In this document: positions 3,206-38,544 of the stretch, one piece after another
How positions within the stretch are numbered: the first letter of the stretch is position 1
Layout: every line of letters begins with the position of its first letter
Assembly (NCBI GenBank): GCA_002269645.1
Contig: NIVC01004648.1
Location: 1-39,495 of the forward strand
Direction of reading: 5' to 3'
DNA length: 39,495 nucleotides
Source of the DNA: Macrostomum lignano
Taxonomy: Eukaryota
Notes under the pieces: model-generated
Databases searched by the model: none
The model's input: only the letters and a program-made list of their open reading frames with translations
What the model was told of the DNA's origin: nothing
Translations under genes and position numbers: made by a program

Positions 3206-3283
3206 AAGTCAGAGTCTTTGCAATATAGACTGTTGCATAAATTTAGATTTAGGCCCACGGTTTCTACCAAGCGCGTCACTCAC

Positions 3284-4945
3284 CTATTCACTGATCCGTC
3301 ATCCTCGATCTTCTGACAGGCTGAGCAAATCCACTTGGCCTCGCTAGCCGGCTTCTCCGGTATCTTCGGCCGGTGGCAGCTGACGTGGTAGCCCTTGTCG
3401 CAGGCGTCACAGATAAGCATCAGCTCCGCGTCGCCTGGATCGAGGCAGACGCAGCAGGTCTTGCACTCGGAGCACTGCCAAGGCGACTGGCGGGCTCGAG
3501 AGGCCAGCTCAACTGAGTAGAGCATGCAGCTAGGATGGGCCCGGTGGCTGCAGTCGCGGCAGGTTAGCAACTGCTCAGGGACGCCCATTCGATTAGCTCG
3601 GCCAGAGGACAAGCAAAAATCGCAGAGTTCATCGTCAGACTGCTGCTGATTAAGCTCTTGCTCAATCTCCTGCTCAGAGTCTTCCTGATGTTGCTGCTGC
3701 TGCTGCTGGGAACGCTCTTCCAGAGAAGCAGCAGATGCTTTGGATTGTTTTCGAGTTTTCTCTTTGTTGTGCTTTGACTTGGTCGTAGCCGGCGATTCAC
3801 TTGGTTGACTTTGGCGTCGCTCCTTCTGCTCGGTTGGATTTGGCGATCCGGCGGTCGCCGGCTTCTCAGCGACTACGGCGGAAGCGGCGGCTACTGCTGG
3901 GGATGCTGAGTCCCTGGCAACGCCTTTGACTCGCGAGATGACCACGGTTGGAATTGGTGGTAGGGCCTGCTGCGGTTGCTTAGTGACAGACGAAGGCTGC
4001 GATGTCGGAGAGTGCTCAGCAGACTGAGCCGCTGGCGTGGCCGTAGTGTCTGCCACAGAGACAGACGTGATGCAGTAAGCAGGTGGCGCAGTTTCACTAT
4101 TAGAGGAGCAATTACTTGAGCTGGAACTCGCGGTGGAGGCTGGCTGCCGCTGCTGCTGCTGAGGCAAGCAATGGCCAACTGACAAGTCCAGCGGTTCGCA
4201 CAGGTCCGACTGAGCTGGCTCGCTTGGTCTCGGCCGCTTAGCCTGGGGCGGGTGAAGCTGCTGCGACTGCTGCTGCTTGTTGCTGTTGCTTGTCTGCTGC
4301 TGCTTGTTGTTGCTGCTGCTGCTGCTGCTCTCCTTGCCCTTTTTGAGCGCCTCCTTATCGCGACGCTTCGATCCGTCCGGGTCGAGAGTGTACCGGCCGG
4401 TGGAGACGCGGCACAGTCCGCCAGTGGACGCCTCGCGTTCGAGCGCCATCTCCAGAGTTTCGCCCTGCAGAGGCTCCGCGCCTGGCGCCGAATCCTCTTC
4501 TTCAGACGTCGCCGACGGCAGGCAGCGCAGACGATCGGCCACGTCCTGAACGGTGAAGCCGGAGGCGAGCACGTCGGGCTGATCGCTGGCCAGGCTGCCG
4601 ACTGCGGCCAACAGGCGACGACTGGTGGCGCTGCTGTTCAACACGCTGCTGATGAGGGAGCCGCGGCGCCATTTTGAAGCATTCCGGTAGGACACGGAGC
4701 CTTTGTACTCGACCTTCAGCACCGAGCCGTCGTCAACTAGACGCTCGAGCAGCTGTACAATGGCCTCCCGTTGGAGACCGTGATGCCGCGTCACCATCGA
4801 ACAGATCCGATCAATATCTGGCCGGGCCTTCCGCTCGCGCAGTTTGTCAATGATGGTCAGGATCATTGTGCGGATCGGCTCATCGCCGAGAGCAGCCGCT
4901 GCAGCCGCGGCGGCTGCTGCTGCTGCGGCGGCTTTTTCCGCGGAA

Positions 4946-4981
<36 letters not shown>

Positions 4982-5295
4982 GACGGTGGCGGAGAAGACA
5001 TCGTTGTGGACGTGACAATGGCGGCTGCGTGTCCGGGCAGCTGCTGAGCGGCGGCCAGATTGTCCGGACGCTGTTGAACTAGCCGATCAACCGAGTGTCC
5101 GATGGAGGACTTGACCGGTGCCGGTGCATGACAGATGTTGTTGTTCTCGCCTAGGCTGGCACTGGTATTATTATTAATGGCAGCCTTTGCACCGCCGTGG
5201 TGATGATGGAGCTGATGGTGATAGCTAGCCACCACCTGCTGCGACGACAGGAAGCCAGGCGGGATGGCCGTCTGCACTGGCAGAGCGCGGGCCAT
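3284..5295 (-). CDS. SAMD1: SAMD1-like chromatin protein, coding exon 1 (SAMD1-type winged helix, second WH-like domain, double PHD finger); join(5295..3284,2778..2493), about 765 aa
   Basis: The ORF 3280-5511 contains IRTMILTIIDKLRERKARPDIDRICSMVTRHHG...YKGSVSYRNA, a close match to the SAMD1 winged helix including the RK pair. It also has a tandem PHD (CDFC...HPSC...CSECKTCCVC...CDACDKGYH..C...WICSAC). First ATG in the open frame is at 5295. Donor AG|GTGAGT after 3284, phase 2. The start may lie further upstream: there is an acceptor-like tgtataccag at 5345-5343. Confidence 0.9.
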
Positions 5296-5399
5296 TTGTT
5301 CTTTCCGTCTTTTTGAGAACTTTCTTTTAGGAAGCAAATTGGCTGGTATACACAACCAGACGGGCAAAAGGGAAGCAAGCTTCTTGGTGGGAGATATTT

Positions 5400-7400
5400 G
5401 CGACGCGCAACGCAGTCTGGGTACCGCTGCTGAGGAGAGCGACAACTTAAAAGCGCGACTGAGTGGGGGGGGGTGGAGGAGAGAGAGGAAGGCAGGGCCT
5501 CCGGGAAGCAAACAGGGCTTTGTGCGAGAGGAGGAAAAAAGAGAAAAAAGCCCGACGGAATTGAGGGGGCAGACAGGGCCTTTTTTCTAGTTAAGGCAGG
5601 CAGGCAAGGCTTTATTCCGCGGATCGCGGGCGGGCGCGCTAAACTCGGGCCGGGCCGTCCGTCTTCTCTTCTTTCTGCTTGGTGGCGGGCCGCGTCGGTG
5701 CCTCCCTGCGCATAAATAGGGGCCCACCGCCACCCCCCACAGCCCCAAGCCTAAGAGAATGAGGGGTCGGAACTGGAAGCGAAGAACTGGGGGGGGGGGC
5801 GGGTGACGCGCTCACTCGGTCCAGATCGCCCCCGCCGCTCTCCAGTCCGGCCGCCAACCCCGCCTCCCCAAACCAAAGCGGCCTCAGCCAGTGAAACGAG
5901 AGGAGAGCCCGCCGCCGCGCCGGGCCGCTCTCCAGAGCCTGTTTCGCGGGCCTTTGCCACCTTCCCACTCACCCCCCCCCACACGCAGCAGACTAAGGCC
6001 AAGGCCCGGTCCGCTTTTGCCCGGCGGCGGCGGAGGAGTGGGGCAGGGGTTGGGCCGCGGGTTTATGGCCCTGGGGCGCGCTGGGCCGTGCCGCTGACGC
6101 GGTCTTGGCTTCTATGCTTCGCTTCGCCTCCTCTCCTAGTTCTCCCGCGCTCCTGGGGCCGTGGAGCCGCCCCGCCGCCTGCAGCCCCTCAAGGCCAAAG
6201 CCGAAAAAAACTGGAAGAGAGCGCAGCGCGCTCAGCGTCACCGCCAGCCAGAGCCAGACAGAATGCTCCGGAAGAGAGCTCTCTTTCAAATCCCGCCCCA
6301 ATGCGAAATAAGTCAAACAGGGATGGTGCGGCCTTGAAGACAAAATAGACTTCTGATGATTGCCTAAAAATTAATAAGCTCCCCAGATTTCCTACTGATA
6401 AAAGTGGCACAGACAGACGAGTCATTGACAGGCTGAAATCCCCGGGATTTTTCCGGGGATCGAATTCTTAAACTGGACTCTACACAAGACGCCGCTTACT
6501 CTACAGCTCTCGCGCACCACCCCTGCAACCGAAAGAAGGACCTCCGTCGATGCTCGATGCAGCCGGTCAGTCATCCACCCGAAACCCCTCTGTCTCTCTC
6601 ACTCACTGCGCCAGACACTCGTTCGTCCTAATGAATTCTCCACTGCGCCGGCTCCTATCCTCGTGCGTCAGCCCCGCCTTGCCCGCGTTGCCTGTCTCTC
6701 GGTTGCCCTTGCCTGCCCGCCTCTCCCACCTCTTCTTTGCTCTTTCTCTTCAGTGTCGCGGCTGCTGCGGCCGCTGGCCTCGCCTGCCTAGACGCGCGCT
6801 CAACCCGGTTCTTCCTTCCTCTTCCTCTCTCTTTCTCTTTCTCTCAGCCGGCAGGCGGCCCAGCCATCGAGGGGGGGGGGGAGTTGAGCTAAGTAGCCCG
6901 AGAGCCTATATAGGTATAAGGTGGATAGGCGGGCCGTCCCCCCCACCTTTTTCTCTCTTTTTTCTTGCCAGCCATGAGCCTCAAATCCGCCGATGCGAGT
7001 CGCCGCAAGGCCGCCCCCCCCCCTGGGGTCTATTCATCTTTTCCCCTATATATCTATCTATATTGCTCATCCCTTATACCTGTATAGATTCCTCATTTTT
7101 TTCCACATCCTGCCAGCAGGAGCAGAATCTGAGCTGAGCCGAGCCTATAGCTATAGCTAGTCCCTAGTCCGCGCCACTTCCCCGTTTCCTCACCCCTCTC
7201 TATCCTCCCCCTCCCCTCGTCGATTCTTGATCCCCATTTTCCCAACCGCGAGCGCGCGGGTGCGAACGGAGCGCTCACGGGGATCAAGAGGCGAGGCGAG
7301 CAATCGTTCCTATAGAAAAGTTGCAAATCTCCCATCCTAGTCCTCTACCTGCCGCCTTCCACCCACCTAATCATTCGAACACACTGCATCCTGTTCTGTT
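5400..7400. promoter_or_regulatory. GC/CpG-rich non-coding block directly upstream of the SAMD1-like gene (promoter / 5' region)
   Basis: High CpG density, G-runs, no credible ORF. A perfect CArG-type palindrome CCTATATAGG lies at 6905-6914. Function is inferred from position. Confidence 0.5.
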
Positions 7401-20368: not shown

Positions 20369-21368
20369 ACTGGCGCCACTTTGATGGCACTAGCGCCACT
20401 TTGATGGCACTAGCGCCATTTTGATGACACTGGCGCCACTTTGATGGCACTAGCGCCACTTTGATGACACTGGAGCCACTTTGATGCACTAGCGCCCCTT
20501 TTAAGACACTAGCGCCACTTTCGAAGACACTAGTGCCATTTTGAAAGACACAAGCGCCGTTTTTGAAAACACTAGCGCCACTTTTAAGACACTAGCGCCA
20601 TTTTTGAAGACACTAGCGCCATTTTTGAAGACACTAGCGCCATTTTTGAAGACACTAGCGCCATTTTTGAAGACACTAGCGCCATTTTTAAGACATTAGC
20701 GCCATTTTTGAAGACATTAGCACCATTTTTGAAGACACTAGCGCCATTTTTGAAGACACTAGCGCCATTTTTGAAGACATTAGCGCCATTTTTGAAGACA
20801 TTAGCACCATTTTTGAAAACACTAGCGCCATTTTTTAAGACATTAGCGCCATTTTTGAAGACATTAGCACCATTTTTGAAAACACTAGCGCCATTTTTGA
20901 AGACACTAGCGCCATTTTTAAAGACATTAGCGCCATTTTTGAAGACATTAGCACCATTTTTGAAGACATTAGCGCCATTTTTGAAGACACTAGCGCCATT
21001 TTTGAAGACACTAGCGCCATTTTTGAAGACACTAGCGCCATTTTTAAGACATTAGCGCCATTTTTGAAGACACTAGCGCCATTTTTGAAGACACTAGCGC
21101 CATTTTTAAGACACTAGCGCCATTTTTGAAGACACTAGCGCCATTTTTAAGACATTAGCGCCATTTTTGAAGACATTAGCACCATTTTTGAAGACATTAG
21201 CGCCATTTTTTTAAGACACTAGCGCCATTTTTGAAGACACTAGCGCCATTTTTAAGACATTAGCGCCATTTTTGAAGACATTAGCACCATTTCTAAGAAA
21301 CTAGCGCCATTTTTAAAGACATTAGCGCCATTTTTAAAGACATTAGCGCCATTTTTGAAAACACTAGC
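20369..21368. repeat. 20-21-bp minisatellite (gacactagcgccatttttgaa), about 48 copies, in epsin intron 3
   Basis: Direct reading. It explains the KTLAPFL ORF. Confidence 0.97.
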
Positions 21369-23269: not shown

Positions 23270-24560
23270 GTAGGATAGAGGGTTGCGGACTGGAGCAAGG
23301 GAAGGAGTGAGGTGGCTGCAAGATTGAGGGGTTGCAGACTGGGGCAGGGAAGGAGTGAGGTGGCTGCAGGATTGAAGGGTTGCAGACTGGGGCAGGGAAG
23401 GAGTGAGGTGGCTGCAGGATTGAGGGGTTGCGGACTGGGGCAAGGGAAGGAGTGAGGTGGCTGCAGGATTGAGGGGTTGCAGACTGGGGCAGGGAAGGAG
23501 TGAGGTGGCTGCAGGATTGAGGGATTGCGGACTGGGGCAAGGGAAGGAGTGAGGTGGCTGCAGGATTGAGGGGTTGCAGACTGGGGCAGGGAAGGAGTGA
23601 GTGGCTGCAGGATTGAGGGGTTGCGGACTGGGGCAAGGGAAGGAGTGAGGTGGCTGCAGGATTGAAGGGTTGCAGACTGGGGCAGGGAAGGAGTGAGGTG
23701 GCTGCAGGATTGAGGGGTTGCGGACTGGGGCAAGGGAAGGAGTGAGGTGGCTGCAGGATTGAGGGGTTGCAGACTGGGGCAGGGAAGGAGTGAGGTGGCT
23801 GCAGGATTGAGGGATTGCGGACTGGGGCAAGGGAAGGAGTGAGGTGGCTGCAGGATTGAGGGGTTGCAGACTGGGGCAGGGAAGGAGTGAGTGGCTGCAG
23901 GATTGAGGGGTTGCGGACTGGGGCAAGGGAAGGAGTGAGGTGGCTGCAGGATTGAAGGGTTGCAGACTGGGGCAGGGAAGGAGTGAGGTGGCTGCAGGAT
24001 TGAGGGGTTGCAGACTGGGGCAGGGAAGGAGTGAGGTGGCTGCAGGATTGAGGGGTTGCGGACTGGGGCAAGGGAAGGAGTGAGGTGGCTGCAGGATTGA
24101 GGGGTTGCAGACTGGGGCAGGGAAGGAGTGAGGTGGCTGCAGGATTGAGGGGTTGCGGACTGGGGCAAGGGAAGGAGTGAGGTGGCTGCAGGATTGAGGG
24201 GTTGTGGATTGGGCCAAGGGAAGGAGTGAGGTGGCTGCAGGATTGAGGGGTTGCAGACTGGGGCAGGGAAGGAATGAGGTGGCTGCAGGATTGAGGGCTT
24301 GTGGACTGGCCCAAGGGAAGGAGTGAGGTGGCTGCAGGATGGGGTTGCGGACTGGGGTAAGGGAGTGAGGTGTCGGTAAGATTGAGGGGTTGCGGACTGG
24401 GGTAAGGGAAGGAGTGAGGTGGCTGCAGGAGGGGTTGAGGACTGGGGTAAGGGAGTGAGGTGGCTGCAGAATTGGGGGGTTGCGGACTGTGGCAGGGAAG
24501 TTGTGAGGTGTCTGCAGGATTGAGGGGTTGCGGCCTGGGGCAGAGAATGGGGTGGCTGCA
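23270..24560. repeat. 48/49-bp G-rich minisatellite (gggaaggagtgaggtggctgcaggattgaggggttgcagactggggca) with a 290-bp higher-order repeat, epsin intron 1
   Basis: The variant attgaagggt occurs at 23371, 23661 and 23951. It explains the three long repetitive ORFs. Confidence 0.97.
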
Positions 24561-24634
24561 GATTGAACCCAATGCAAGAAAATGTATTACATGACGAATA
24601 GAGAAGAATTTGCAATAAATATTATTATAATTAC

Positions 24635-24975
24635 CTCTCTTCAGAAGGGTACTCAAAGCTTGTCAGCAGCCGAAGTGTAGAGACATTCTCTCGGCACTGC
24701 CAGGCAACCTTCTCGCTGCCAGTCTTCACTAGATACTCCATCAGTACAAGGCCTTTGCAGACATGACGCCAATGCTTGGCTTTGTCTGCTAGGCGCTTCC
24801 ACAGCATGGACATGATCTCAGAAAATGCTTGACTATTATAAGTCATATCTGATATTTCTGACATGAGAGCACCAGAGGGACCCCAAGGGTCATTTGAGGT
24901 GGCTTTGCGCACCTTCACCTGGGCATCAGAGTAGTTATGCACAACATTCTTTAGGTTGCGTCGCAGGGTAGTCAT
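24635..24975 (-). CDS. EPN: Epsin, coding exon 1 (ENTH domain); join(24975..24635,23189..22844,21567..21393,16939..16866), 311 aa
   Basis: MTTLRRNLKNVVHNYSDAQVKVRKATSNDPWGPSG...WKRL...HWRHVCKGL.LMEYLVKTGSE is a canonical ENTH with helix 0. Donor AG|GTAATT after 24635, phase 2. The four exons sum to 936 nt = 311 codons plus stop. Confidence 0.93.
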
Positions 24976-25432
24976 AGCATTTATTTTACTATGTCCACTA
25001 ATCACTTATACTAAAAATGTGAAGACATCAATGAAGTTAGTATGAAATATATTGATTCACTTTGGTTTCATTATCTTCATAAAAGTTTAAATATTAGAGA
25101 TTTTTTATGCAGGACTTTAATATCTTTCAAAAAAGTACTGCTTAAAACATTGCTACTATTGAAATTAAAGGATATTTCTATGAATAGAGGATATCTAACA
25201 AGTTTATAGATATTATAGTTATTTAACATGTAGGTATATCTAGAGAGCAAATAAAAACTATTATATAAAGTACAAAATATAAAATAAATTTAAAACAAAG
25301 CTATATAAAATTTGATAATACAAGTGTTCAAAAAATTGACTATGTTTTATTCTAATAATGCTGGTAGAGTCGCTCGCTTGGCGAGAAGAATACATAGAAA
25401 GCTTAATATCAACATTTGAATATGATTGCAAT

Positions 25433-25490
25433 TTCTAACAACTTCAACGCGTTTCGCACGCCATGGTGCATCATCAGGATTTTATTAGAA
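25433..25490 (-). ncRNA. Second copy of the same hammerhead motif, inverted (core CTGATGA)
   Basis: Reverse complement is identical to 25981-26038 except CTGATGA versus CTGACGA. Confidence 0.75.
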
Positions 25491-25980
25491 CGATTTGAGA
25501 AATTGAGATTGAAAGCAATTGATTAAATATTGGTTTTTGCAATGTACACAGGTAAGGAGGGTAAGATTGAAAACAATTGATTACAACTTGGCTTTAACAA
25601 CATACATAGGTAAAGTAGGTAGGAGAGAGAATTATAGATTGAGATTGAAAGTTAAACCAAATGTACACAATTCTTGTCCAGTGGTCAAAAGGCAGAATCA
25701 GGGGCGGTAGCTAGCTTAAGTAATTGAACATCAAGCTAAGTGTACACAGCGTGCACAACTGTGTCACTCACTGTTCAGAAAACGCGGAGAACGTGACCTG
25801 CACCACTATGTTGTAATTGGGTGTTGAGATTTGGGGTCTGAGCTTTCGGGTCCGAATATACCTATGTATGTTGTTAAAGCCAAGTTGTAATCAATTGTTT
25901 TCAGTCTTACCCTCCTTACCTGTGTACGTTGCAAAAACCAATATTTAATCAATCGCTTTCAATCTCAATTTCTCAAATCG

Positions 25981-26038
25981 TTCTAATAAAATCCTGACGA
26001 TGCACCATGGCGTGCGAAACGCGTTGAAGTTGTTAGAA
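25981..26038 (+). ncRNA. Minimal type I hammerhead ribozyme motif (Penelope-like-element type)
   Basis: ttctaataaaatc-CTGACGA-t-GCAC catggc GTGC-GAAAC-GCGT-T-gaagttgttagaa. Conserved core; 4-bp stem II; palindromic ACGCGT stem III; GUU triplet; stem I with 2+9 bp around a 2x2 mismatch. Confidence 0.75.
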
Positions 26039-26958
26039 ATTGCAATCATATTCAAATGTTGATATTAAGCTTTCTATTTATTCTAATAATAACTTTGTCA
26101 TTAAAATATTCTAGATTTAAAAAAATATTAGTTGGCTATACTATTGTTAATAAAGAATAATATTGAACCATTATTTAAACAGTTTATTTATAGCCCTCTA
26201 AACTCATCCCTAGTTAGGTCTAATGATTGATAGTACATTATTTTCTTAGCCTTATTTCTAATTTAAATAACTTATCTAAACTAACCAAAATATAAAGTAA
26301 AAAGGACATTGCATTGCTAAGTAAGAAAATATAAACCTAACAAATTAAATTATTTTTTAGATAAGTAAAAGTACTAATACAATTAGTAGTAGCTTAGGTG
26401 AGAGGCAAAAGAGGCTATAGCCCCTAAATGACTATTGTTCAAAGCTTTCCTAGGGATGACTATTATATCTTCTAGTATTAGCATTTTTGGGAAATTTTAG
26501 CATAATGTTGTTCTAATTCTAAAAATTTGCTAGGGGGTGACCACCTAATAAATATCCCCCTTCCTAATTAAAGGTACTGCATTATCATTAAATATATAAA
26601 TTCCCATTTAAAAATACTGATCAAATAATTAAGTTTAATTAGATACCTAAGTATGCCAATGCTTTAGACTTAGTGTCTATAGCAAAATAAAAGAGAACTA
26701 TTTAATACAACTTGACCCTTGCTTATAATAGGATTTAGAATATTTAGGGCTCAAGTAATATAGGTGTAGGTAGGCGTGTAGCTTGCTTGGAAAATAGTAA
26801 ATAAATAAAAGTAATAATAATTAACATAAAGAAAAGAACTATATTAAGGTTTCCATTGCCTATCTATTTTGTCCACAATTTTTATAATAGATAAAATGCA
26901 TTAGCATTTGGCATGGTTGGGTATCTAATAAAATTCAATTAAATATTAAACTCAAATT

Positions 26959-28796: not shown

Positions 28797-29313
28797 GTAC
28801 ACGTACGTCTTTTTATCCACAAATCGAATCTATATTACTTGATTATTTAACCATTTGGAAGCCAAAGGGCTGCACTGCAGGCCATACCAAAACGGCCCAA
28901 AAGCCCAGAGATTCAAAAATATCTATAGCATCAAAAACCATATCCCCAGTCACTAACGCAACTGCCCAGAATGGCCACTGTATGACCCAGTATGCAGGCC
29001 ATGACTAATTTAAAGAAGTGGGCACCAAGTGGTTAAGGTCTAATGATTTCTTACAAAACTTAAGCAAGAAGTGCCTATTCCTTCAGAGTCGTAATCACCA
29101 TTTTATACCGGGCCGGGTTGGGGGTCGAATTGGCCGATTGGGTCACATACGTCATTGGAGGGGTTACACATAGGGCTTGTGAGACAAAATTGGTTGCGCA
29201 GTGTAATTTTTGCTTAGTGGGAATTGTGGAATCCCTGGAATGTAAATGATTTACAGATCAAGTAGCCCTGTGTATTTCAACAGGGTCTGAAAATTGAAAC
29301 TTCTCTTTTTCAG

Positions 29314-30316: not shown

Positions 30317-30759
30317 TTATTTAAAATTCAGCGCCCTGCTGGGCACGCTCTGATAAATAACGCTTATCGCCACACCGCTGATGGCCAAGAACAGCCAGAA
30401 CAGAATTCTGTCAGCCGATCTGGCCAGAGCAACCCACGCTTCTGGGCTGCTGCACAGGCAGCTGCTCAATTCTTCCTTATGCAGTCCTCCTCGCGGCTTG
30501 CCTCTGGCAACGCTATCCCCAGCCATCTCTGCTTCATCGCTGCCCAGTTCTCTAACAACTGCCGGCTGTTGCTCCTTGCGTCTTGGGCGTCGCCGGTAGC
30601 GACAGCTTTGCTGACAGTGAAATCTGGACACGTAGCGGCGGAGACAGTCGGGCACTCGACCAGTTGAGCGGGTGAACTTTCTCACGTGAATATTGGTCAC
30701 TGCGACGGCCATCAGGAGAGCCAGAGATACCATTAGCATTGTGGAGCCGAAGAGTAGAC
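30317..30759 (-). CDS. nAChR alpha subunit, last exon (M3, short intracellular loop, M4)
   Basis: caaacag|, phase 1. Reads GLLFGSTMLMVSLALLMAVAVTNIHVR (M3)...EAWVALARSADRILFWLFLAISGVAISVIY (M4). Stop TAA at 30319-30317. AATAAA on the minus strand at 30238-30233. The four visible exons total 1140 nt, in frame. Confidence 0.9.
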
Positions 30760-30924
30760 CTGTTTGAAGTGCAGGGTGTACTTTGTTATTTTATTTGTTA
30801 GCATGCCAGAGGTCGGCAGACTCCAGCCCACTGGCCACATGCAGCCCGCAAAGCCTCTCTATCCGGCCCTCGGGTCCCTTGAAACTTCACAATAGCAATC
30901 CGGCCCGCTCAAGGTTTGTTGAGC

Positions 30925-32457
30925 TCTTTTCAGCTCTCTTCTCTCAGCTCTCTTCTCTCAGCTCTCTTCTCTCCTCTCTCCCCTCTCCCTATCCTCTCTT
31001 CCCCTCTCCTCTCTTCTCTCTTTTGTCCCCTGTCATCTCTTCTCTCCACTCTCCCCTCTCCTCTCTTTTTTCTCCTATCTTCTCGCTTCTCTTCTCTCCT
31101 CTCTCCCCTCTCCTCTCCCCGTCTCATCTCTTCTATCTTCTCTTCTCTCCTCTCTCCACTCTCCTCTCTCCTCTCTCCCTCTCCTCTCCCCCTCTCATCT
31201 CTTCTCTCTTCTCTTCTCTCCTCTCTCCCTTCTCCTCTCCCCGTCTCATCTCTTCTATCTTCTCTTCTCTCCTCTCTCCACTCTCCTCTCTCCACTCTCC
31301 CCTCTCCTCTCTTTTCTCTCCTATCTTCTCTCTTTTCTTCTCTCCTCTCTCCCTCTCCTCTCCCCCTCTCATCTCTTCTCTCTTCTCTTCTCTCCTCTCT
31401 CCCTTCTCCTCTCCCCGTCTCATCTCTTCTATCTTCTCTTCTCTCCTCTCTCCACTCTCCTCTCTCCACTCTCCCCTCTCCTCTCTTCTCTTCTCTCCTC
31501 TCTCCCCTCTCCTCTCCCCGTCTCATCTCTTCTATCTTCTCTTCTCTCCTCTCTCCACTCTCCTCTCTCCACTCTCCCCTCTCCTCTCTTTTCTCTCCTA
31601 TCTTCTCTCTTTTCTTCTCTCCTCTCTCCCCTCTCCTCTCCCCCTCTCATCTCTTCTCTCTTCTCTTCTCTCCTCTCTCCCTTCTCCTCTCCCCGTCTCA
31701 TCTCTTCTATCTTCTCTTCTCTCCTCTCTCCCCTCTCCTCTCCCCCCTCTCATCTCTTCTCTCTTCTCTTCTCTCCTCTCTCCCTTCTCCTCTCCCCGTC
31801 TCATCTCTTCTATCTTCTCTTCTCTCCTCTCTCCACTCTCCTCTCTTTTCTCTCCTCTCTTCTATCTTCTCTTCTCTCCTCTCTCCCCTCTCCTCTCCCC
31901 CCTCTCATCTCTTCTATCTTCTCTTCTCTCCTCGCTCCCTCTCCTCTCTCCACTCTCCCCTCCTCTCTTTTCTCTCATCTCTTCTCTCTTCTCTTCTCTC
32001 CTCTCTCCCCTCTCCTCTCCCCCCTCTCATCTCTTCTATCTTCTCTTCTCTCCTCTCTCCACTCTCCTCTCTCCACTCTCCCCTCTCCTCTCTTTTCTCT
32101 CCTATCTTCTCTCTTTTCTTCTCTCCTCTCTCCCCTCTCCTCTCCCCCTCTCATCTCTTCTCTCTTCTCTTCTCTCCTCTCTCCCTACTCCTCTCCCCGT
32201 CTCATCTCTTCTATCTTCTCTTCTCTCCTCTCTCCCCTCTCCTCTCCCCCTCTCATCTCTTCTCTCTTCTCTTCTCTCCTCTCTCCCTTCTCCTCTCCCC
32301 GTCTCATCTCTTCTATCTTCTCTTCTCTCCTCTCTCCACTCTCCTCTCTCCACTCTCCCCTCTCCTCTCTTTTCTCTCCTATCTTCTCTCTTCTCTTCTC
32401 TCCTCTCTCCCTCTCCTCTCTTTTCTCTCATCTCTTCTCTCTTCTCTCCCCTCTCCA
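30925..32457. repeat. About 1.5-kb polypyrimidine (CT-rich) compound satellite in the last nAChR intron
   Basis: Almost only C/T on the plus strand, built from ctctc/cttct/catct modules in recurring longer blocks. Confidence 0.97.
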
Positions 32458-32979
32458 GAGATCAGAGCTTCTAGCCAAACACAGCAAAGTGAGATATTGA
32501 GAAATAATCATGCATGTATTCTAAGAAAATAAATTGAATTATTATAAATCTCGTACTGTAAACAAAGATTATTATTCAAACCATAGTCAGTATAGTTGAA
32601 CGGGCTGCAATTTCTTTTTCAGAGTTCTTCTATAGGCCAACAAGTAGCCAGTGTGTAGTCAAGCCCGTCTTGATAACTATGAGTAGTAGTGCTCAGTCGT
32701 TGCTTCGCTCCAAGGAGTTTTTGCATCAATGCTGAGCTACTTCGAATACTCAGGTGAGAAGCTGGGGGACATGGCAATTTGCTTCGAGCTGTACCGTTTT
32801 TGGCTCAAGTATTGCATTTTTAAAGAGTTTCCATTACCATTTTTGATACGCTTAATAAACATCACAGTCGATATTCATTGTAATGATATCACTACTCAAA
32901 TACTTCAACGCCAATTCTAGTTTCCAAGTCCTAATCAGTCCCAAACCGTCTGAAACCATCCTAAAAATCCCTAAAAAGC

Positions 32980-34200
32980 ATTCAAATCCCATCCTAATCC
33001 CAAATATCTAGATCCCATCCTAGACATAAAAATCCCATCCTGAATATCCAGATCCCATCCTAAATATCCAGATCCCATTCTAAGCATCCAGATCCCATCC
33101 TAAATATCCAGATCCCATCCTAAGCATCCAGATCCCATCCTAGGCATTCAGATCCCATCCTAAGCATCCAGATCCCATCCTAAATATCCAGATCCCATCC
33201 TAAACATTCAACTCCCATCCTAGGCATTCAGATCCCACCCTAAGCATGTAGATCCCATCCTAAGCATTCAGATCCCATCCTAAACAGTTAGATCCAATCC
33301 TAAACAGTTAGATCCCACCCTAAATATTCTAATACCATCCTAAATATCCAGATCCCATCCTAAACATACAAATCCCATCCTAAGCATCCAGATCCCATCC
33401 CAAGCATTCAACTCCCATCCTAGGCATTCAGATCCCACCCTAAGCATGCAGATCCCATCCTAAGCATTCAGATCCCATCCTAAACAGTTAGATCCAATCC
33501 TAAACAGTTAGATCCCACCCTAAATATTCTAATACCATCCTAAATATCCAGATCCCATCCTAAACATACAAATCCCATCCTAAGCATCCAGATCCCATCC
33601 CAAGCATTCAACTCCCATCCTAGGCATTCAGATCCCACCCTAAGCATGCAGATCCCATCCTAAGCATTCAGATCCCATCCTAAACAGTTAGATCCAATCC
33701 TAAACAGTTAGATCCCACCCTAAATATTCTAATACCATCCTAAATATCCAGATCCCATCCTAAACATACAAATCCCATCCTAAGCATCCAGATCCCATCC
33801 CAAGCATTCAACTCCCATCCTAGGCATTCGGATCCCATCCTAAACAGTTAGATCCCATCCTAAACAGTTAGATCCCATCCTAAACAGTTAGATCCCATCC
33901 TAAACAGTTAGATCCCATCCTAAACAGTTAGATCCCATCCTAAACAGTTAGATCCCATCCTAAACAGTTAGATCCCATCCTAAACAGTTAGATCCCATCC
34001 TAAACAGTTAGATCCCATCCTAAACAGTTAGATCCCACCCTAAATATTCTAATACTATCCTAAATATCCAGATCCCATCCTAAATATCCAAATCTCACCC
34101 TAAACATCCAAATCCCATCATTAGCATCAAATCCCATCCTAAACATCCAAATCCCCTTGAAAATATCCAAACACATCCTTAAGCATTTAAATCCCATTCT
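32980..34200. repeat. 20-bp minisatellite (gatcccatcctaaacagtta) with a 200-bp higher-order repeat
   Basis: The variant taaatattctaatacc occurs at 33321, 33521 and 33721. A homogeneous run lies at 33840-34040. Confidence 0.96.
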
Positions 34201-34267
34201 ACAAGGGTTAAGCACTAAAATCCCCCAGCAATTCGCCCAGCCTCATCCCCAGCATCCCCTTACTCAC

Positions 34268-34809
34268 CCACAAGCGGAATGGCATCGGGTGTAGGCGGCA
34301 GAGTGTCGCCAACAATCATGAGGAACACCACCAGAGCCAGCAGGATGGTCAGCTCCAAGTTGACTTTCTCGCCAGACTCGGCGGGCAAGAAGAAGCCGAG
34401 CCAACTGGTAAGGTACATCAGGGCGCAGGGGAACACCAGGTTCAACACGTAGAACAGTGATCGTCGAGTCATGTCGATGGTGATGGTGATGTCCGGCCAG
34501 GGCTCACTGCAGCAGGCGTACACCCCGGTAGAGCGGGAATAGGCTATGCTGGTCACATTCCACTCTTGACTGGCCTCCGAGAAGTAGTTTCTGTTGGCGT
34601 CCACTGATTCGTCGTGCCACAGGTCCACCTGGTACAGGTGATAAGTCCAGCTGATGAAGGTGACATTGCAGCGCTGCGAGTCGAATGGGAAATACTTGAC
34701 AGCCAAGTTGCAGGTGACCTTCACCAGGGCTGGGAACATCCACAGCACGGAGCCGTTGTGCTGAACAACAATGTTTGTGCTGGCGAAGCGTTTGTTACTG
34801 TCGTCTGCG
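34268..34809 (-). CDS. nAChR alpha subunit, 542-nt exon (Cys-loop, loops B and C with vicinal CC, M1, M2)
   Basis: cccattgcag|, phase 2. Contains SADD...CNLAVKYFPFDSQRC (13-residue Cys loop), SWTY, YACCSEPWPD, RRSLFYVLNLVFPC (M1), LPAESGEKV (M2). Donor G|GTGAGT, phase 1. The motifs most resemble alpha9/alpha10. Confidence 0.95.
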
Positions 34810-34826
34810 CTGCAATGGGAGATTAG

Positions 34827-36906
34827 GGATCAAGGACCACTGTAGCATAACAGGATCAAGGACCACTGTAGCATAACAGGATCAAGGACCACTGTAGCAT
34901 AACAGGATCAAGAACCACTGTAGTATAACAGGATCAAGGACCACTGTAGTATAACAGGATCAAGGACCACTGTAGCATAACAGGATCAAGGACCACTGTA
35001 GCATAACAGGATCAAGGACCACTGTAGCATAACAGGATCAAGAACCACTGTAGCATAACAGGATCAAGGACCACTGTAGCATAACAGGATCAAGAACCAC
35101 TGTAGCATAACAGGATCAAGGACCACTGTAGTATAACAGGATCAAGGACCACTGTAGCATAACAGGATCAAGGACCACTGTAGCATAACAGGATCAAGAA
35201 CCACTGTAGTATAACAGGATCAAGGACCACTGTAGTATAACAGGATCAAGGACCACTGTAGCATAACAGGATCAAGGACCACTGTAGCATAACAGGATCA
35301 AGGACCACTGTAGCATAACAGGATCAAGAACCACTGTAGCATAACAGGATCAAGGACCACTGTAGCATAACAGGATCAAGAACCACTGTAGCATAACAGG
35401 ATCAAGGACCACTGTAGTATAACAGGATCAAGGACCACTGTAGCATAACAGGATCAAGGACCACTGTAGCATAACAGGATCAAGAACCACTGTAGTATAA
35501 CAGGATCAAGGACCACTGTAGTATAACAGGATCAAGGACCACTGTAGTATAACAGGATCAAGGACCACTGTAGCATAACAGGATCAAGGACCACTGTAGC
35601 ATAACAGGATCAAGACCACTGTAGCATAACAGGATCAAGGACCACTGTAGCATAACAGGATCAAGAACCACTGTAGCATAACAGGATCAAGGACCACTGT
35701 AGTATAACAGGATCAAGGACCACTGTAGCATAACAGGATCAAGGACCACTGTAGTATAACAGGATCAAGGACCACTGTAGTATAACAGGATCAAGGACCA
35801 CTGTAGCATAACAGGATCAAGGACCACTGTAGTATAACAGGATCAAGACCACTGTAGCATAACAGGATCAAGGACCACTGTAGCATAACAGGATCACGGA
35901 CCACTGTAGCATAACAGGATCAAGGACCACTGTAGCATAACAGGATCAAGGACCACTGTAGCATAACAGGATCAAGGACCGCTGTAGTATAGCAGGATCA
36001 AGGACCACTGTAGCATAACAGGATCAAGGACCGCTGTAGTATAGCAGGATCAAGGACCACTGTAGCATAACAGGATCAAGGACCACTGTAGCATAACAGG
36101 ATCAAGGACCACTGTAGCATAACAGGATCAAGGACCACTGTAGCATAACAGGATCAAGGGCCGCTGTAGTATAACAGGATCAAGGACCACTGTAGTATAA
36201 CAGGATCAAGGACCACTGTAGCATAACAGGATCAAGGACCACTGTAGTATAACAGGATCAAGGACCACTGTAGTATAACAGGATCAAGGACCACTGTAGT
36301 ATAACAGGATCAAGGACCACCGTAGCATAACAGGATCAAGGACCACTGTAGTATAACAGGATCAAGGACCACTGTAGTATAACAGGATCAAGGACCACTG
36401 TAGTATAACAGGATCAAGGACCACTGTAGTATAACAGAATCAAGAACCACTGTAGTATAACAGGATCAAGGACCACTGTAGCATAACAGGATCAAGGACC
36501 ACTGTAGTATAACAGGATCAAGGACCACTGTAGTATAACAGGATCAAGGACCGCTGTAGCATAACAGGATCAAGGACCACTGTAGCATAACAGGATCAAG
36601 GACCACTGTAGCATAACAGGATCAAGGACCACTGTAGTATAACAGGATCAAGAACCACTGTAGTATAACAGGATCAAGGACCACTGTAGTATAACAGGAT
36701 CAAGGACCACTGTAGCATAACAGGATCAAGGACCGCTGTAGTATAACAGGATCAAGGACCACTGTAGTATAACAGGATCAAGGACCGCTGTAGTATAACA
36801 GGATCAAGGACCACTGTAGTATAACAGGATCAAGGACCGCTGTAGTATAACAGGATCAAGGACCACTGTAGTATAACAGGATCAAGGACCACTGTAGTAT
36901 ACAGGA
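34827..36906 (+). repeat. 26-bp minisatellite (ggatcaaggaccactgtagcataaca), about 80 copies
   Basis: Direct reading. Confidence 0.98.
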
Positions 36907-37064
36907 CGTACGAGGTGCAACTCAAAACTCAAAGATTTTGCGATTTTTTGGAGGCCAAATATCCTGGAAAAAAAAGACACTGCGAGATAAGAAACATTTT
37001 TTACATCACAAAATCAATGACTGCATTTGATTTGGGTGAGTTAAAATTACCATTTCTTTAATTA

Positions 37065-37375
37065 TCCTGTCATACTACAGCGGTTCTTGATCCTGTTTTA
37101 CTACAGTGGTCCTTGATCCTGTTATACTACAGTGGTCCCTGATCCTGTTATACTACAGTGGTCCTTGATCCTGTTATACTACAGTGGTCCTTGATCCTGT
37201 TATGCTACAGTGGTCCTTGATCCTGTTATGCTACAGTGGTCCTTGATCCTGTTATACTACAGCGGTCCTTGATCCTGTTATGCTACAGTGGTCCTTGATC
37301 CTGTTATACTACAGTGGTCCTTGATCCTGTTATGCTACAGTGGTCCTTGATCCTGTTATGCTACAGCGGTCCTTG
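37065..37375 (-). repeat. Same 26-bp minisatellite in inverted orientation, about 12 copies
   Basis: tgttatgctacagtggtccttgatcc is the reverse complement of the unit at 34827-36906. Confidence 0.97.
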
Positions 37376-37995
37376 GCAGCTAAGGATTAGTGCCAGCAGT
37401 AGGCTTCAGTTTAGTTGCCATAAATCAGCGAGAAGGCCAGCAGTCAGGCCCTCGATTCCTCGATCTCATCAGTCGATAATGGCAACAATGAATTCCGCGC
37501 ATTCATTGTTTTTCAAGCTCCAATTATTCAGAATTTCCAATCCCAAAGCATCGCCTCAAGGCATTTCTCTCTCCGCGAATGCGAATTTTTGTAAAGCCAA
37601 GGCAAACAATTGAAACGAATAATGAAATTGAACGGGTTAATGTAATTCATTTTATGTTTAATACTTTGTACTTTTAAATCGGGAAAATTTTAAGCCAAGA
37701 TTGAAGGAGTCGCAGCCACAGAGACACGCAGACGCCAAGCGTTGGCCCACCCTGCTATTTATTTTTTACCAAAGCCTGCCCTCCAAAATTCTAGTGGGCA
37801 GCCAGTTTTAATCAATTCATTTCTTTGACCGCCGATCCGAGCCAATTTTGTCGGATCGCTGAAGCTGAAAAACTGATTGGATTCAACTGATGCTGCTGAA
37901 AGCTTTCTGGGGCCCGAAATTGGATTGTACCGAATAGGTTAGTAAGCATAACTTAGTAAATATGCTGACCCTCTACTGTCAAGCTCTACTCACTG

Positions 37996-38338
<343 letters not shown>

Positions 38339-38343
38339 CGCAC

Positions 38344-38453
38344 CTGTTGGAGATGACAATATCAGGAGTCCATATCGAGCCAGATGGGATATGTATGGAC
38401 TGGGTGCCATTGAACTCGTCCGGCAGCCAAATCAGGTGTTCGTCTGTCCACCG
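38344..38453 (-). CDS. nAChR alpha subunit, 110-nt exon (loop A)
   Basis: ttttcag|CGG TGG...AAC AG|GTGCGT. Reads RWTDEHLIWLPDEFNGTQSIHIPSGSIWTPDIVISN. Confidence 0.9.
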
Positions 38454-38544
38454 CTGAAAATAAGCGTGTACAAAATCGGTAAAGTACTCGCGGGCGGTTG
38501 CAATAAAACATGTGCCAGAAAAGTGATTCGAAATCATCAATTAC

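Follow-up and report, generated by a model that had tools for sequence, protein, structure and literature searches.

The fold-back found just upstream of the start codon of an epsin gene in Macrostomum lignano is very probably the footprint of one insertion, into AT-rich DNA, by a Penelope-like element (PLE) or by a non-coding RNA mobilised through PLE machinery. It lies in a stretch of 39,495 nucleotides (nt) of contig NIVC01004648.1 (GenBank assembly GCA_002269645.1), henceforth the window, and consists of two inverted arms, each of which carries a minimal hammerhead ribozyme motif. Judged from sequence, the assignment to the PLE type rests on a tail found on one side only, a target-site duplication (TSD), 3' ends that face outwards, and relatives elsewhere that lie beside reverse transcriptase (RT) open reading frames (ORFs) of PLEs. 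An earlier note on this DNA had proposed a PLE- or retrozyme-like insert, and it is the PLE part of this proposal that is borne out by these features; the retrozyme part, at least in the sense of a retrozyme giving rise to circular RNA, is not, since there is no tandem arrangement and no tandem copy of the element is found in the window.

Anatomy of the insertion

Inverted-repeat analysis of the window delimits two arms of 233 nt each (inverted repeat I1), at 25387-25619 and 25852-26084, which are 97% complementary and separated by a gap of 232 nt. When the arms are compared position by position the innermost 7 nt are ragged and the other 226 nt contain 5 mismatches, which is the figure that the earlier note had given for its 226-bp arms. 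The whole insert unit measures 745 bp, and about 400 bp lie between it and the epsin start codon. The left arm appears to represent the 3' part of a PLE-type copy on the minus strand, in the sense orientation relative to epsin, and the right arm a shorter, 5'-truncated and tail-less PLE-type copy on the plus strand. Two tandem units of 58 nt are found in each arm (direct repeat D1, 78%; 25506-25621 and, as its mirror, 25859-25965), and the array runs on along the minus strand into the central spacer (25620-25851, 232 nt), where a third, degenerate unit at about 25622-25680 includes a 14-nt identity (25638-25651 equals 25502-25515). The presence of this third unit suggests that, of the two copies, it is the minus-strand one that is longer and reaches into the spacer, and the spacer is thus most likely a further 5' portion of the longer copy, stopping where the shorter one joins. 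The spacer contains no hammerhead by the descriptor, no tRNA and no Rfam family; an origin of spacer or tail from a tRNA or the head of a short interspersed element (SINE) was also considered and discarded, as ARAGORN found nothing. No further copies of the arm element occur in the window.

The two copies stand head to head with their 3' ends outwards, and in each arm 59 nt separate the predicted ribozyme cut from the outer end. Beyond the left arm only, the minus-strand copy carries a one-sided 3' tail of 27 nt (25360-25386), which is GC-rich, contains a CTCGC/GCGAG hairpin and has no counterpart on the right, where the arm runs directly into the TSD. The TSD itself is an exact, AT-rich direct repeat of 14 bp, TTTATTCTAATAAT, with its left copy at 25346-25359 and its right copy at 26077-26090, the first 8 nt of the latter overlapping the end of the right arm (7 of these 8 match the other arm). 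Alternatively these 8 nt may be assigned to the target, in which case the right arm ends at 26076 and the tail becomes 35 nt long (25360-25394). A match of at least 14 was seen in just 5 of 2507 random pairs of 61-nt windows taken from the adjacent AT-rich DNA (empirical p of about 0.002) and in none of 3000 shuffles.

The canonical structure of EN+ PLE insertions was reportedly set out by Evgen'ev and Arkhipova in 2005. The anatomy of PLEs is described as 5' truncation with an adjacent inverted truncated copy and a tail of 30-40 bp at one end (PMC8557442), and it has furthermore been found that the Anolis PLE protein in vitro cuts and extends both strands of the target, has a preference for AT-rich sites and initiates reverse transcription without homology at two adjacent internal sites, the interval between which is the tail (PMC11167929). 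The window shares with EN+ PLE insertions (Craig et al. 2021, PMC8557442; Anolis Poseidon, Frangieh et al. 2024, PMC11167929) the 5'-truncated, inverted and abutting copies, the tail at one end and the AT-rich target, and its hammerheads are, as in EN+ PLEs, located tens of nt upstream of the 3' end, the distance from cut to end being 59 and 86 nt. It differs from EN+ PLEs in containing the terminal few hundred nt only, with neither an ORF for RT and GIY-YIG endonuclease nor a tandem pseudo-long terminal repeat (pseudo-LTR). On this model the RT/endonuclease of a PLE would have nicked both strands of the target and reverse transcription would have been primed from each, one cDNA beginning at the distal start and so including the tail, the other beginning at the proximal start and lacking it. 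Both cDNAs would have stopped early, leaving an inverted pair of copies of about 233 nt and, if the spacer is included, about 490 nt. The source element could be autonomous or non-autonomous, since two 5'-truncated 3' ends could derive from either.

The same layout is encountered in five related inverted pairs from the metagenome contigs described below (L006, L064, L076, L084 and L048), all of which are head to head with a tail on one arm only. Their arms are of different length (172 nt in L006, 192 nt in L064 and 53 nt in L076), with shared outer ends and variable inner ends. The related tail is likewise about 27 nt long, has the conserved sequence ATGATGCAYGG..., is found in 17 of 92 copies and begins 56-81 nt after the cut, and in L006 and L064 the pair plus its tail is enclosed by TSDs of 12 bp. 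It may be mentioned that the TSD and the outer end of the tail-less arm have 8 nt in common in the window (26077-26084), 6 nt in L064 (897-902) and 2 nt in L006 (6213-6214). Such an overlap of 2-8 nt between target and template would suggest that the proximal start of reverse transcription is guided by microhomology in vivo, three loci being too few to judge. The 8-nt (7/8) target/template microhomology at the tail-less end in the window differs in this respect from the homology-free initiation of Poseidon in vitro (PMC11167929).

The divergence of the arms is about 2%, and three of the five differences (25473, 25517 and 25543 against 25998, 25954 and 25928, respectively) have CpG in the right arm and TpG/CpA in the left, position N7 of the ribozyme being among them. 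Together with the low divergence, this loss of CpG from the left arm points to an insertion that is young and undergoing neutral decay, and the one-sidedness of the pattern hints at cytosine methylation on the copy nearer epsin.

The hammerhead motif and its relatives

The claim of the earlier note that each arm carries a full hammerhead core is upheld in detail, in that every position of the type I core (C3 U4 G5 A6 N7 G8 A9 / G12 A13 A14, A15.1-U16.1, H17) is present in both arms. In the plus-strand motif (25981-26038), which was read from the sequence and matches the descriptor, the strands of stem I are 25981-25993 and 26026-26038, and the stem is made up of 2 bp, a 2x2 internal loop and 9 bp. 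The box CUGACGA (25994-26000) is followed by a bulged, unpaired U (26001) and by a stem II of 4 bp, GCAC (26002-26005) with GUGC (26012-26015), which is closed by the loop CAUGGC and in which the G10.1-C11.1 pair is G26002-C26015. G12-A14 (26016-26018) are part of the GAAA at 26016-26019, ACGCGU (26019-26024) spans A15.1 to U16.1, and U17 is 26025, after which the cut is predicted. In the minus-strand motif (25433-25490), likewise a descriptor match, stem I pairs 25490-25478 with 25445-25433, CUGAUGA is found at 25477-25471, the bulged U is 25470 and the predicted cut falls between 25446 and 25445, so that the parse arrives at the very sites predicted earlier, after 26025 on the plus strand and after 25446 on the minus strand. 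The sole difference between the two motifs is N7, a free core position, which is C in the former and U in the latter.

Helix III, ACGCGU, is self-complementary and leaves no loop, and closure within one molecule is not seen; the helix can therefore form only between two RNAs. This is a known property of the PLE/newt class of hammerheads and does not disqualify the motif. A descriptor composed of the core and a stem II of at least 4 bp with G10.1-C11.1 matches the two arm sites only in the window, as compared with a mean of 0.005 matches per window in 400 dinucleotide-preserving shuffles, and with the palindromic helix III and H17, or with stem I as well, there were no matches in the 400 shuffles. 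The simple pattern CTGANGA..CGAAAC occurs three times in the window, where 0.10 is expected; the third site (4457-4505) lies inside a coding exon, failed the descriptor and was rejected.

The motif has the characters of the minimal hammerhead ribozymes found in PLE pseudo-LTRs (PMC4209133), being of type I with a CUGANGA/GAAA core, an extra nucleotide between A9 and G10.1 and the G10.1-C11.1 pair, and having self-complementary 15.x-16.x positions, which implies a dimeric active form, as well as a partner on the opposite strand. With the bulged U, G10.1-C11.1 and the palindromic helix III all present, the earlier identification of dimer-type minimal type I hammerheads of the PLE kind holds. Pairs of such ribozymes 100-700 bp apart on opposite strands have already been described in PLEs, mostly in dispersed truncated copies, and the variant with a small palindromic helix III is known from PLEs of Drosophila, rotifers, shrimp and mosquitoes (PMC4209133). 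The window differs from these ribozymes in its stem II, which is 4 bp as compared with 7-8 bp in the Schistosoma families and mostly 5-6 bp in the relatives considered here, in its long stem I (2 bp, the internal loop and 9 bp), and in that there is no PLE ORF within 39.5 kb.

A few side observations concern possible reading frames in the motif. Loop II (26004-26011) includes a Kozak-like CACCAUGG, the frame of which stops after 6 codons, and an AUG located 27 nt past the cut site (AAAUGUUG) opens a frame that continues for about 18 codons, up to where the tail ends (26052-26084 with the tail 25360-25386). By analogy, the latter may recall PLEs in which an ORF starts right after the hammerhead (L097, Anolis Poseidon), though at this length it is not statistically meaningful. 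It was also considered that the conserved bulged U, as in the Anolis PLE, might serve to make a start codon of A9-U-G10.1, and this was dismissed as a general rule, the frame closing within 10-20 codons in the 38-nt class and in the window.

Relatives were sought with a relaxed pattern, TCCTGANGA-N10-22-CGAAACGCGTTGA, in which the boxes UCCUGANGA and CGAAACGCGUUGA are fixed and the 10-22 nt between them are free, and which retrieved 93 metagenome contigs; the exact 36-nt ribozyme pattern had no match in metagenome contigs, and two patterns run against viral contigs had none. A 1-nt bulge is present in 66 of the 70 unique gap sequences, being U in 63, and a stem II of at least 4 bp can be formed in 60 of the 70, as compared with 7% of random gaps. 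Furthermore, G10.1-C11.1 is found in all of 59 relatives, and N7 can be any of the four bases. When 62 of the relatives are aligned without gaps, stem II proves to be 93% paired, and double compensatory changes are seen in 5 of its 6 pairs; pairs 3-4 of stem I covary too. The covariation score of stem II amounts to 0.318, as opposed to 0.176 in shuffles (0 of 500 reach 0.318) and at most 0.115 in controls with slid partners. A covariance model built from the relatives alone, a test that involves some circularity, the fixed boxes having been taken from the window, finds the two arms as its matches in the window, at 38.2 bits for the minus-strand motif (E 7e-10) and 36.5 bits for the plus-strand motif (E 3e-9), the next best score being 13.9. 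About 5-6 of the 93 contigs (L041, L043, L062, L072, L073 and probably L007) have high GC and no stem II and were left out of the alignment; these are open in all frames, have CTGACGATGAACCG.CCCGAGG.GCGAAACGCGTTGAGCACCGA in common and probably represent conserved bacterial coding sequence that matches the pattern by chance.

The relatives furthermore provide the connection to PLEs. Contig L040 contains an ORF of 842 amino acids (aa) with an RVT_1 match (E 8e-9), a DKG motif and YVDD, the C-terminus of which reads VVYRIRC...YIGKT...EH...CHQH...GH and is of the GIY-YIG/CCHH type, and about 120 nt past its stop codon a hammerhead of the same type is found on the same strand. The endonuclease-like region of this ORF aligns by BLASTP with the ORF of L048, which has a weak PF01541 match. 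Its homologues include hundreds with RVT_1, several with a precomputed PF01541 and some that are named GIY-YIG endonuclease by their source. The endonuclease assignment of L040 thus depends on its motifs, on the L048 alignment and on those homologues that have PF01541; a PDB sequence search with the ORF gave no match. On the contigs of three homologues of the L040 ORF (L094/L095, L096 and L097) there are also bulged-U hammerheads with a self-complementary helix III, located on the strand of the ORFs and between or just outside them. In L094/L095 helix III is AGCU, and in L096 (3395-3456) and L097 (295-358 and 3145-3208) it is ACGU in a U3-A8 core variant, UUGAUAA-U-stem II-GAAACGUC, which has also been described in Cercyon PLEs (Cervera & de la Pena 2014, PMC4209133). 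L097 has two tandem RT ORFs, the second of which begins about 20 nt downstream of a hammerhead. A pseudo-LTR position in an element encoding RT and GIY-YIG is thus found in L040, L094/L095, L096 and L097, and not in the window. In the inverted hammerhead pair of L048 (4149-4212 on the minus strand and 4412-4475 on the plus strand) helix III is ACAUGU with C17, instead of ACGCGU with U17, a double change by which the self-complementarity is kept, and such a palindrome, which changes in sequence and yet stays a palindrome, is what is predicted of a dimeric helix III formed between two copies. In all, five related contigs have bulged-U hammerheads with a palindromic helix III next to RT ORFs of a family with GIY-YIG-bearing members, that is, PLEs.

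Activity of the ribozymes and rival explanations

The ribozymes are probably inactive at the locus, since there is a single copy on each strand and since read-through RNA would bury the motif in a 226-bp duplex. Descriptor, pattern count and covariance model agree on one hammerhead per strand in the window, and there can therefore be no dimer in cis. The minimum free energy (MFE) fold of the monomer is not the hammerhead (-14.5 kcal/mol versus -10.5 for the hammerhead fold), and the MFE of the region is no more stable than that of shuffles (z from -0.6 to +1.6). The homodimeric double hammerhead is predicted at -29.9 kcal/mol, two free monomers at -29.0 and the MFE of the dimer at -32.8; by these calculations a double hammerhead between two separate RNAs would be energetically feasible and not favoured. 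For a transcript that crosses both arms the prediction is a duplex of 226 bp at about -428 kcal/mol, and if the region is transcribed at all, a double-stranded RNA (dsRNA) hairpin would seem the most plausible product. In published work single minimal hammerheads showed no detectable self-cleavage, and dimers and trimers only low activity (PMC4209133), and in the Anolis PLE hammerhead mutants left insertion in vitro unaffected and no RNA-seq reads ended at the hammerhead site (PMC11167929). Most likely, then, the insert is an inert young relic that does nothing at present.

The earlier note had gone further in suggesting that a 5' intron or outron of epsin could contain the minus-strand hammerhead, which would cut the pre-mRNA, and that the inverted arm makes the locus a hairpin switch or a source of endogenous small interfering RNA (siRNA) regulating epsin. 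The geometry is as supposed, for the minus-strand motif is sense to epsin and the predicted cut lies 470 nt upstream of the ATG (about 460 nt had been given). Moreover, a consensus TACTAAC branch point (25042-25036 on the minus strand), a sequence with just 6 occurrences in the whole window on both strands, is found 26 nt upstream of a pyrimidine tract and AG (25012-25011), the AG being 36 nt before the ATG, and an intron in the 5' untranslated region (5'-UTR) or a trans-splice acceptor upstream of the ATG is likely from these signals, so that the proposed location is plausible. The fold-back RNA is in addition predicted to be extremely stable, and long hairpin RNAs are known substrates of the siRNA pathway. 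Against this stand the lack of a cis dimer, the monomer's preference for another fold and an MFE like that of shuffles, as well as the published behaviour of minimal hammerheads and of the Anolis PLE cited above, and furthermore the arm divergence of about 2% and the fresh TSD mark a recent insertion and not a conserved device. We therefore regard a regulatory function of this kind as very improbable.

We attach similarly little credence to the notion that the locus is a metazoan non-LTR retrozyme, that is, a small non-autonomous repeat, the RNA of which is cleaved at two hammerhead sites and then closed into a circle by ligation. The likeness is real, in so far as metazoan retrozymes (Cervera & de la Pena 2020, PMC7229834) are small, AT-rich and non-coding repeats without an ORF, bearing a type I hammerhead whose helix III is short and palindromic and whose architecture depends on dimers, and in so far as the frames from the A9-U-G10.1 AUG and from the loop-II AUG close within about 20 codons in both arms of the window. 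The source family could also be of this kind, a 2026 preprint deriving animal retrozymes from PLE pseudo-LTRs, to which metazoan retrozymes are probably related. In retrozymes, however, units of about 150-450 bp, each with a single ribozyme, are repeated in tandem head to tail (PMC7229834), whereas the copies in the window are inverted with one hammerhead per strand in 39.5 kb, and hence no RNA of unit length can be excised or circularised; furthermore the core has the bulged U of the PLE type, and the canonical type I model of Rfam is unmatched. A similar consideration applies to the classical dimer-dependent hammerheads of newt satellite 2 and Schistosoma Sm-alpha (cited in PMC4209133), with which the window motif shares type I and an unstable helix III that needs the double-hammerhead conformation. 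Those hammerheads are arranged in tandem satellite or SINE-like arrays, and Rfam Hammerhead_1 recognises them, whereas the window motif forms an inverted pair that this model does not match. Least probable of all, in our view, is a non-autonomous DNA transposon, either a miniature inverted-repeat transposable element (MITE) or a Foldback-like element, with terminal inverted repeats of 233 bp, a TSD of 14 bp and a hammerhead-like motif that is incidental. Long and nearly perfect inverted repeats bracketed by a direct repeat are indeed what such an element would show, but the ends are asymmetric, as 27 nt of unique sequence separate the left arm from the TSD and the right arm abuts or overlaps it. 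In the relatives, moreover, the module is mostly single, the paired arms of 53, 172 and 192 nt form a 5'-truncation series, the TSDs are 12-14 bp and the tails are optional, and the motif family shows covariation at the RNA level and adjoins RT ORFs.

Several points nevertheless weigh against an insertion by PLE machinery. The link of the window to PLEs is made through insertion anatomy and relatives and is in this sense indirect, as no ORF for the RT/GIY-YIG of a PLE is present in the 39.5 kb and tblastn with the L040 ORF found nothing in the window. The strict tail of 27 nt is slightly under the published 30-40 bp, the 8-nt overlap of TSD and arm end blurs the exact boundaries, and we infer, rather than see, that the central spacer belongs to the longer copy. 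As to the relatives, there is no nucleotide similarity between the window element and the 93 loci outside the ribozyme module, and since the pattern was taken from the window its fixed boxes match by construction, so that the independent evidence comes from the gap, stem I and the flanks. The Pfam GIY-YIG model had no significant match in the L040 ORF, including when applied to the C-terminal 127 aa. Finally, the Rfam hammerhead models, to which the earlier note had looked for confirmation, disappointed: Hammerhead_1 and the other hammerhead families were unmatched at gathering scores, at E<=10 on 901 nt and on the 81 nt alone, and the cmscan matches to JUMPstart, SNORD56, mir-449, mir-3015 and CRISPR-DR58 were set aside as noise (E>1). 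This miss, like the non-hammerhead fold of the monomer, does fit the published minimal hammerheads of PLEs, which have no closable helix III and escaped canonical descriptors (PMC4209133).

Epsin, the remainder of the window and implications

The gene downstream of the insert was recognised as epsin from the ORF and translation of its first coding exon (24631-24975 on the minus strand, with the ATG at 24975-24973), which encodes an ENTH domain (homologues with PF01417, best E 2e-45) and has a best identity of about 69%, reached equally with arthropod, annelid and nematode proteins. Within the insert a number of donor-like sites are found on the strand of epsin, namely CAG|GTAAGG (25918-25922) and AGG|GTAAGA (25909-25910) in the right arm, where they are antisense to the plus-strand copy, and ACA|GTGAGT in the spacer (25771), and another, TTT|GTAAGA, is located at 29054. 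Paired with the acceptor at 25011, such sites might in principle allow exonisation of the insert. Co-option of the insertion by epsin, by which its position in a 5'-UTR intron or outron would let the hairpin, the sense hammerhead or a donor-like site such as CAG|GTAAGG (25919) alter 5' processing, is nonetheless judged a faint prospect; its routes would be the production of dsRNA and siRNA, exonisation, or cleavage by ribozymes dimerised in trans when the family is highly expressed.

The window as a whole has the appearance of animal nuclear DNA, with GC-rich exons in AT-rich, repeat-laden non-coding sequence. Besides epsin it contains, all on the minus strand, a long exon (3280-5511) for a KAT6/MOZ-like N-terminus, in which an H1/5-like domain is followed by PHD fingers and which has long poly-Q and poly-A runs, and the exons of a Cys-loop receptor (30317-38540). 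Tandem repeats make up, by a rough estimate, one fifth of the window. A GC-rich minisatellite (23272-24547) with a 48-nt unit in about 27 copies and higher-order periods of 97 and 290 nt occupies the greater part of the first epsin intron, producing long spurious minus-strand ORFs, a 21-nt tandem array in 48 copies (20369-21368) is found downstream of the epsin exons, and a 1.5-kb CT-rich tract of low complexity (30934-32456) lies between the last and the upstream exons of the receptor gene.

Elements of this kind, including hammerhead pairs on opposite strands, have been known since 2014, and the insertion mechanism was described in 2021-2024. The fold-back ribozyme pair next to epsin can be regarded as a standard PLE insertion footprint, the value of which lies mainly in annotation, the more so as annotation based on Rfam misses this type of PLE insertion entirely. 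The related loci go somewhat further in that they offer a natural in vivo illustration of the priming on both strands and of the two reverse transcription start sites that have been proposed for PLEs, and in that they provide clear covariation support for a class of hammerheads with a bulged U and a palindromic helix III. If the insert does lie in a 5' intron of epsin and hairpin RNA is made from it, this would be a modest case of a young transposon affecting a housekeeping endocytosis gene.

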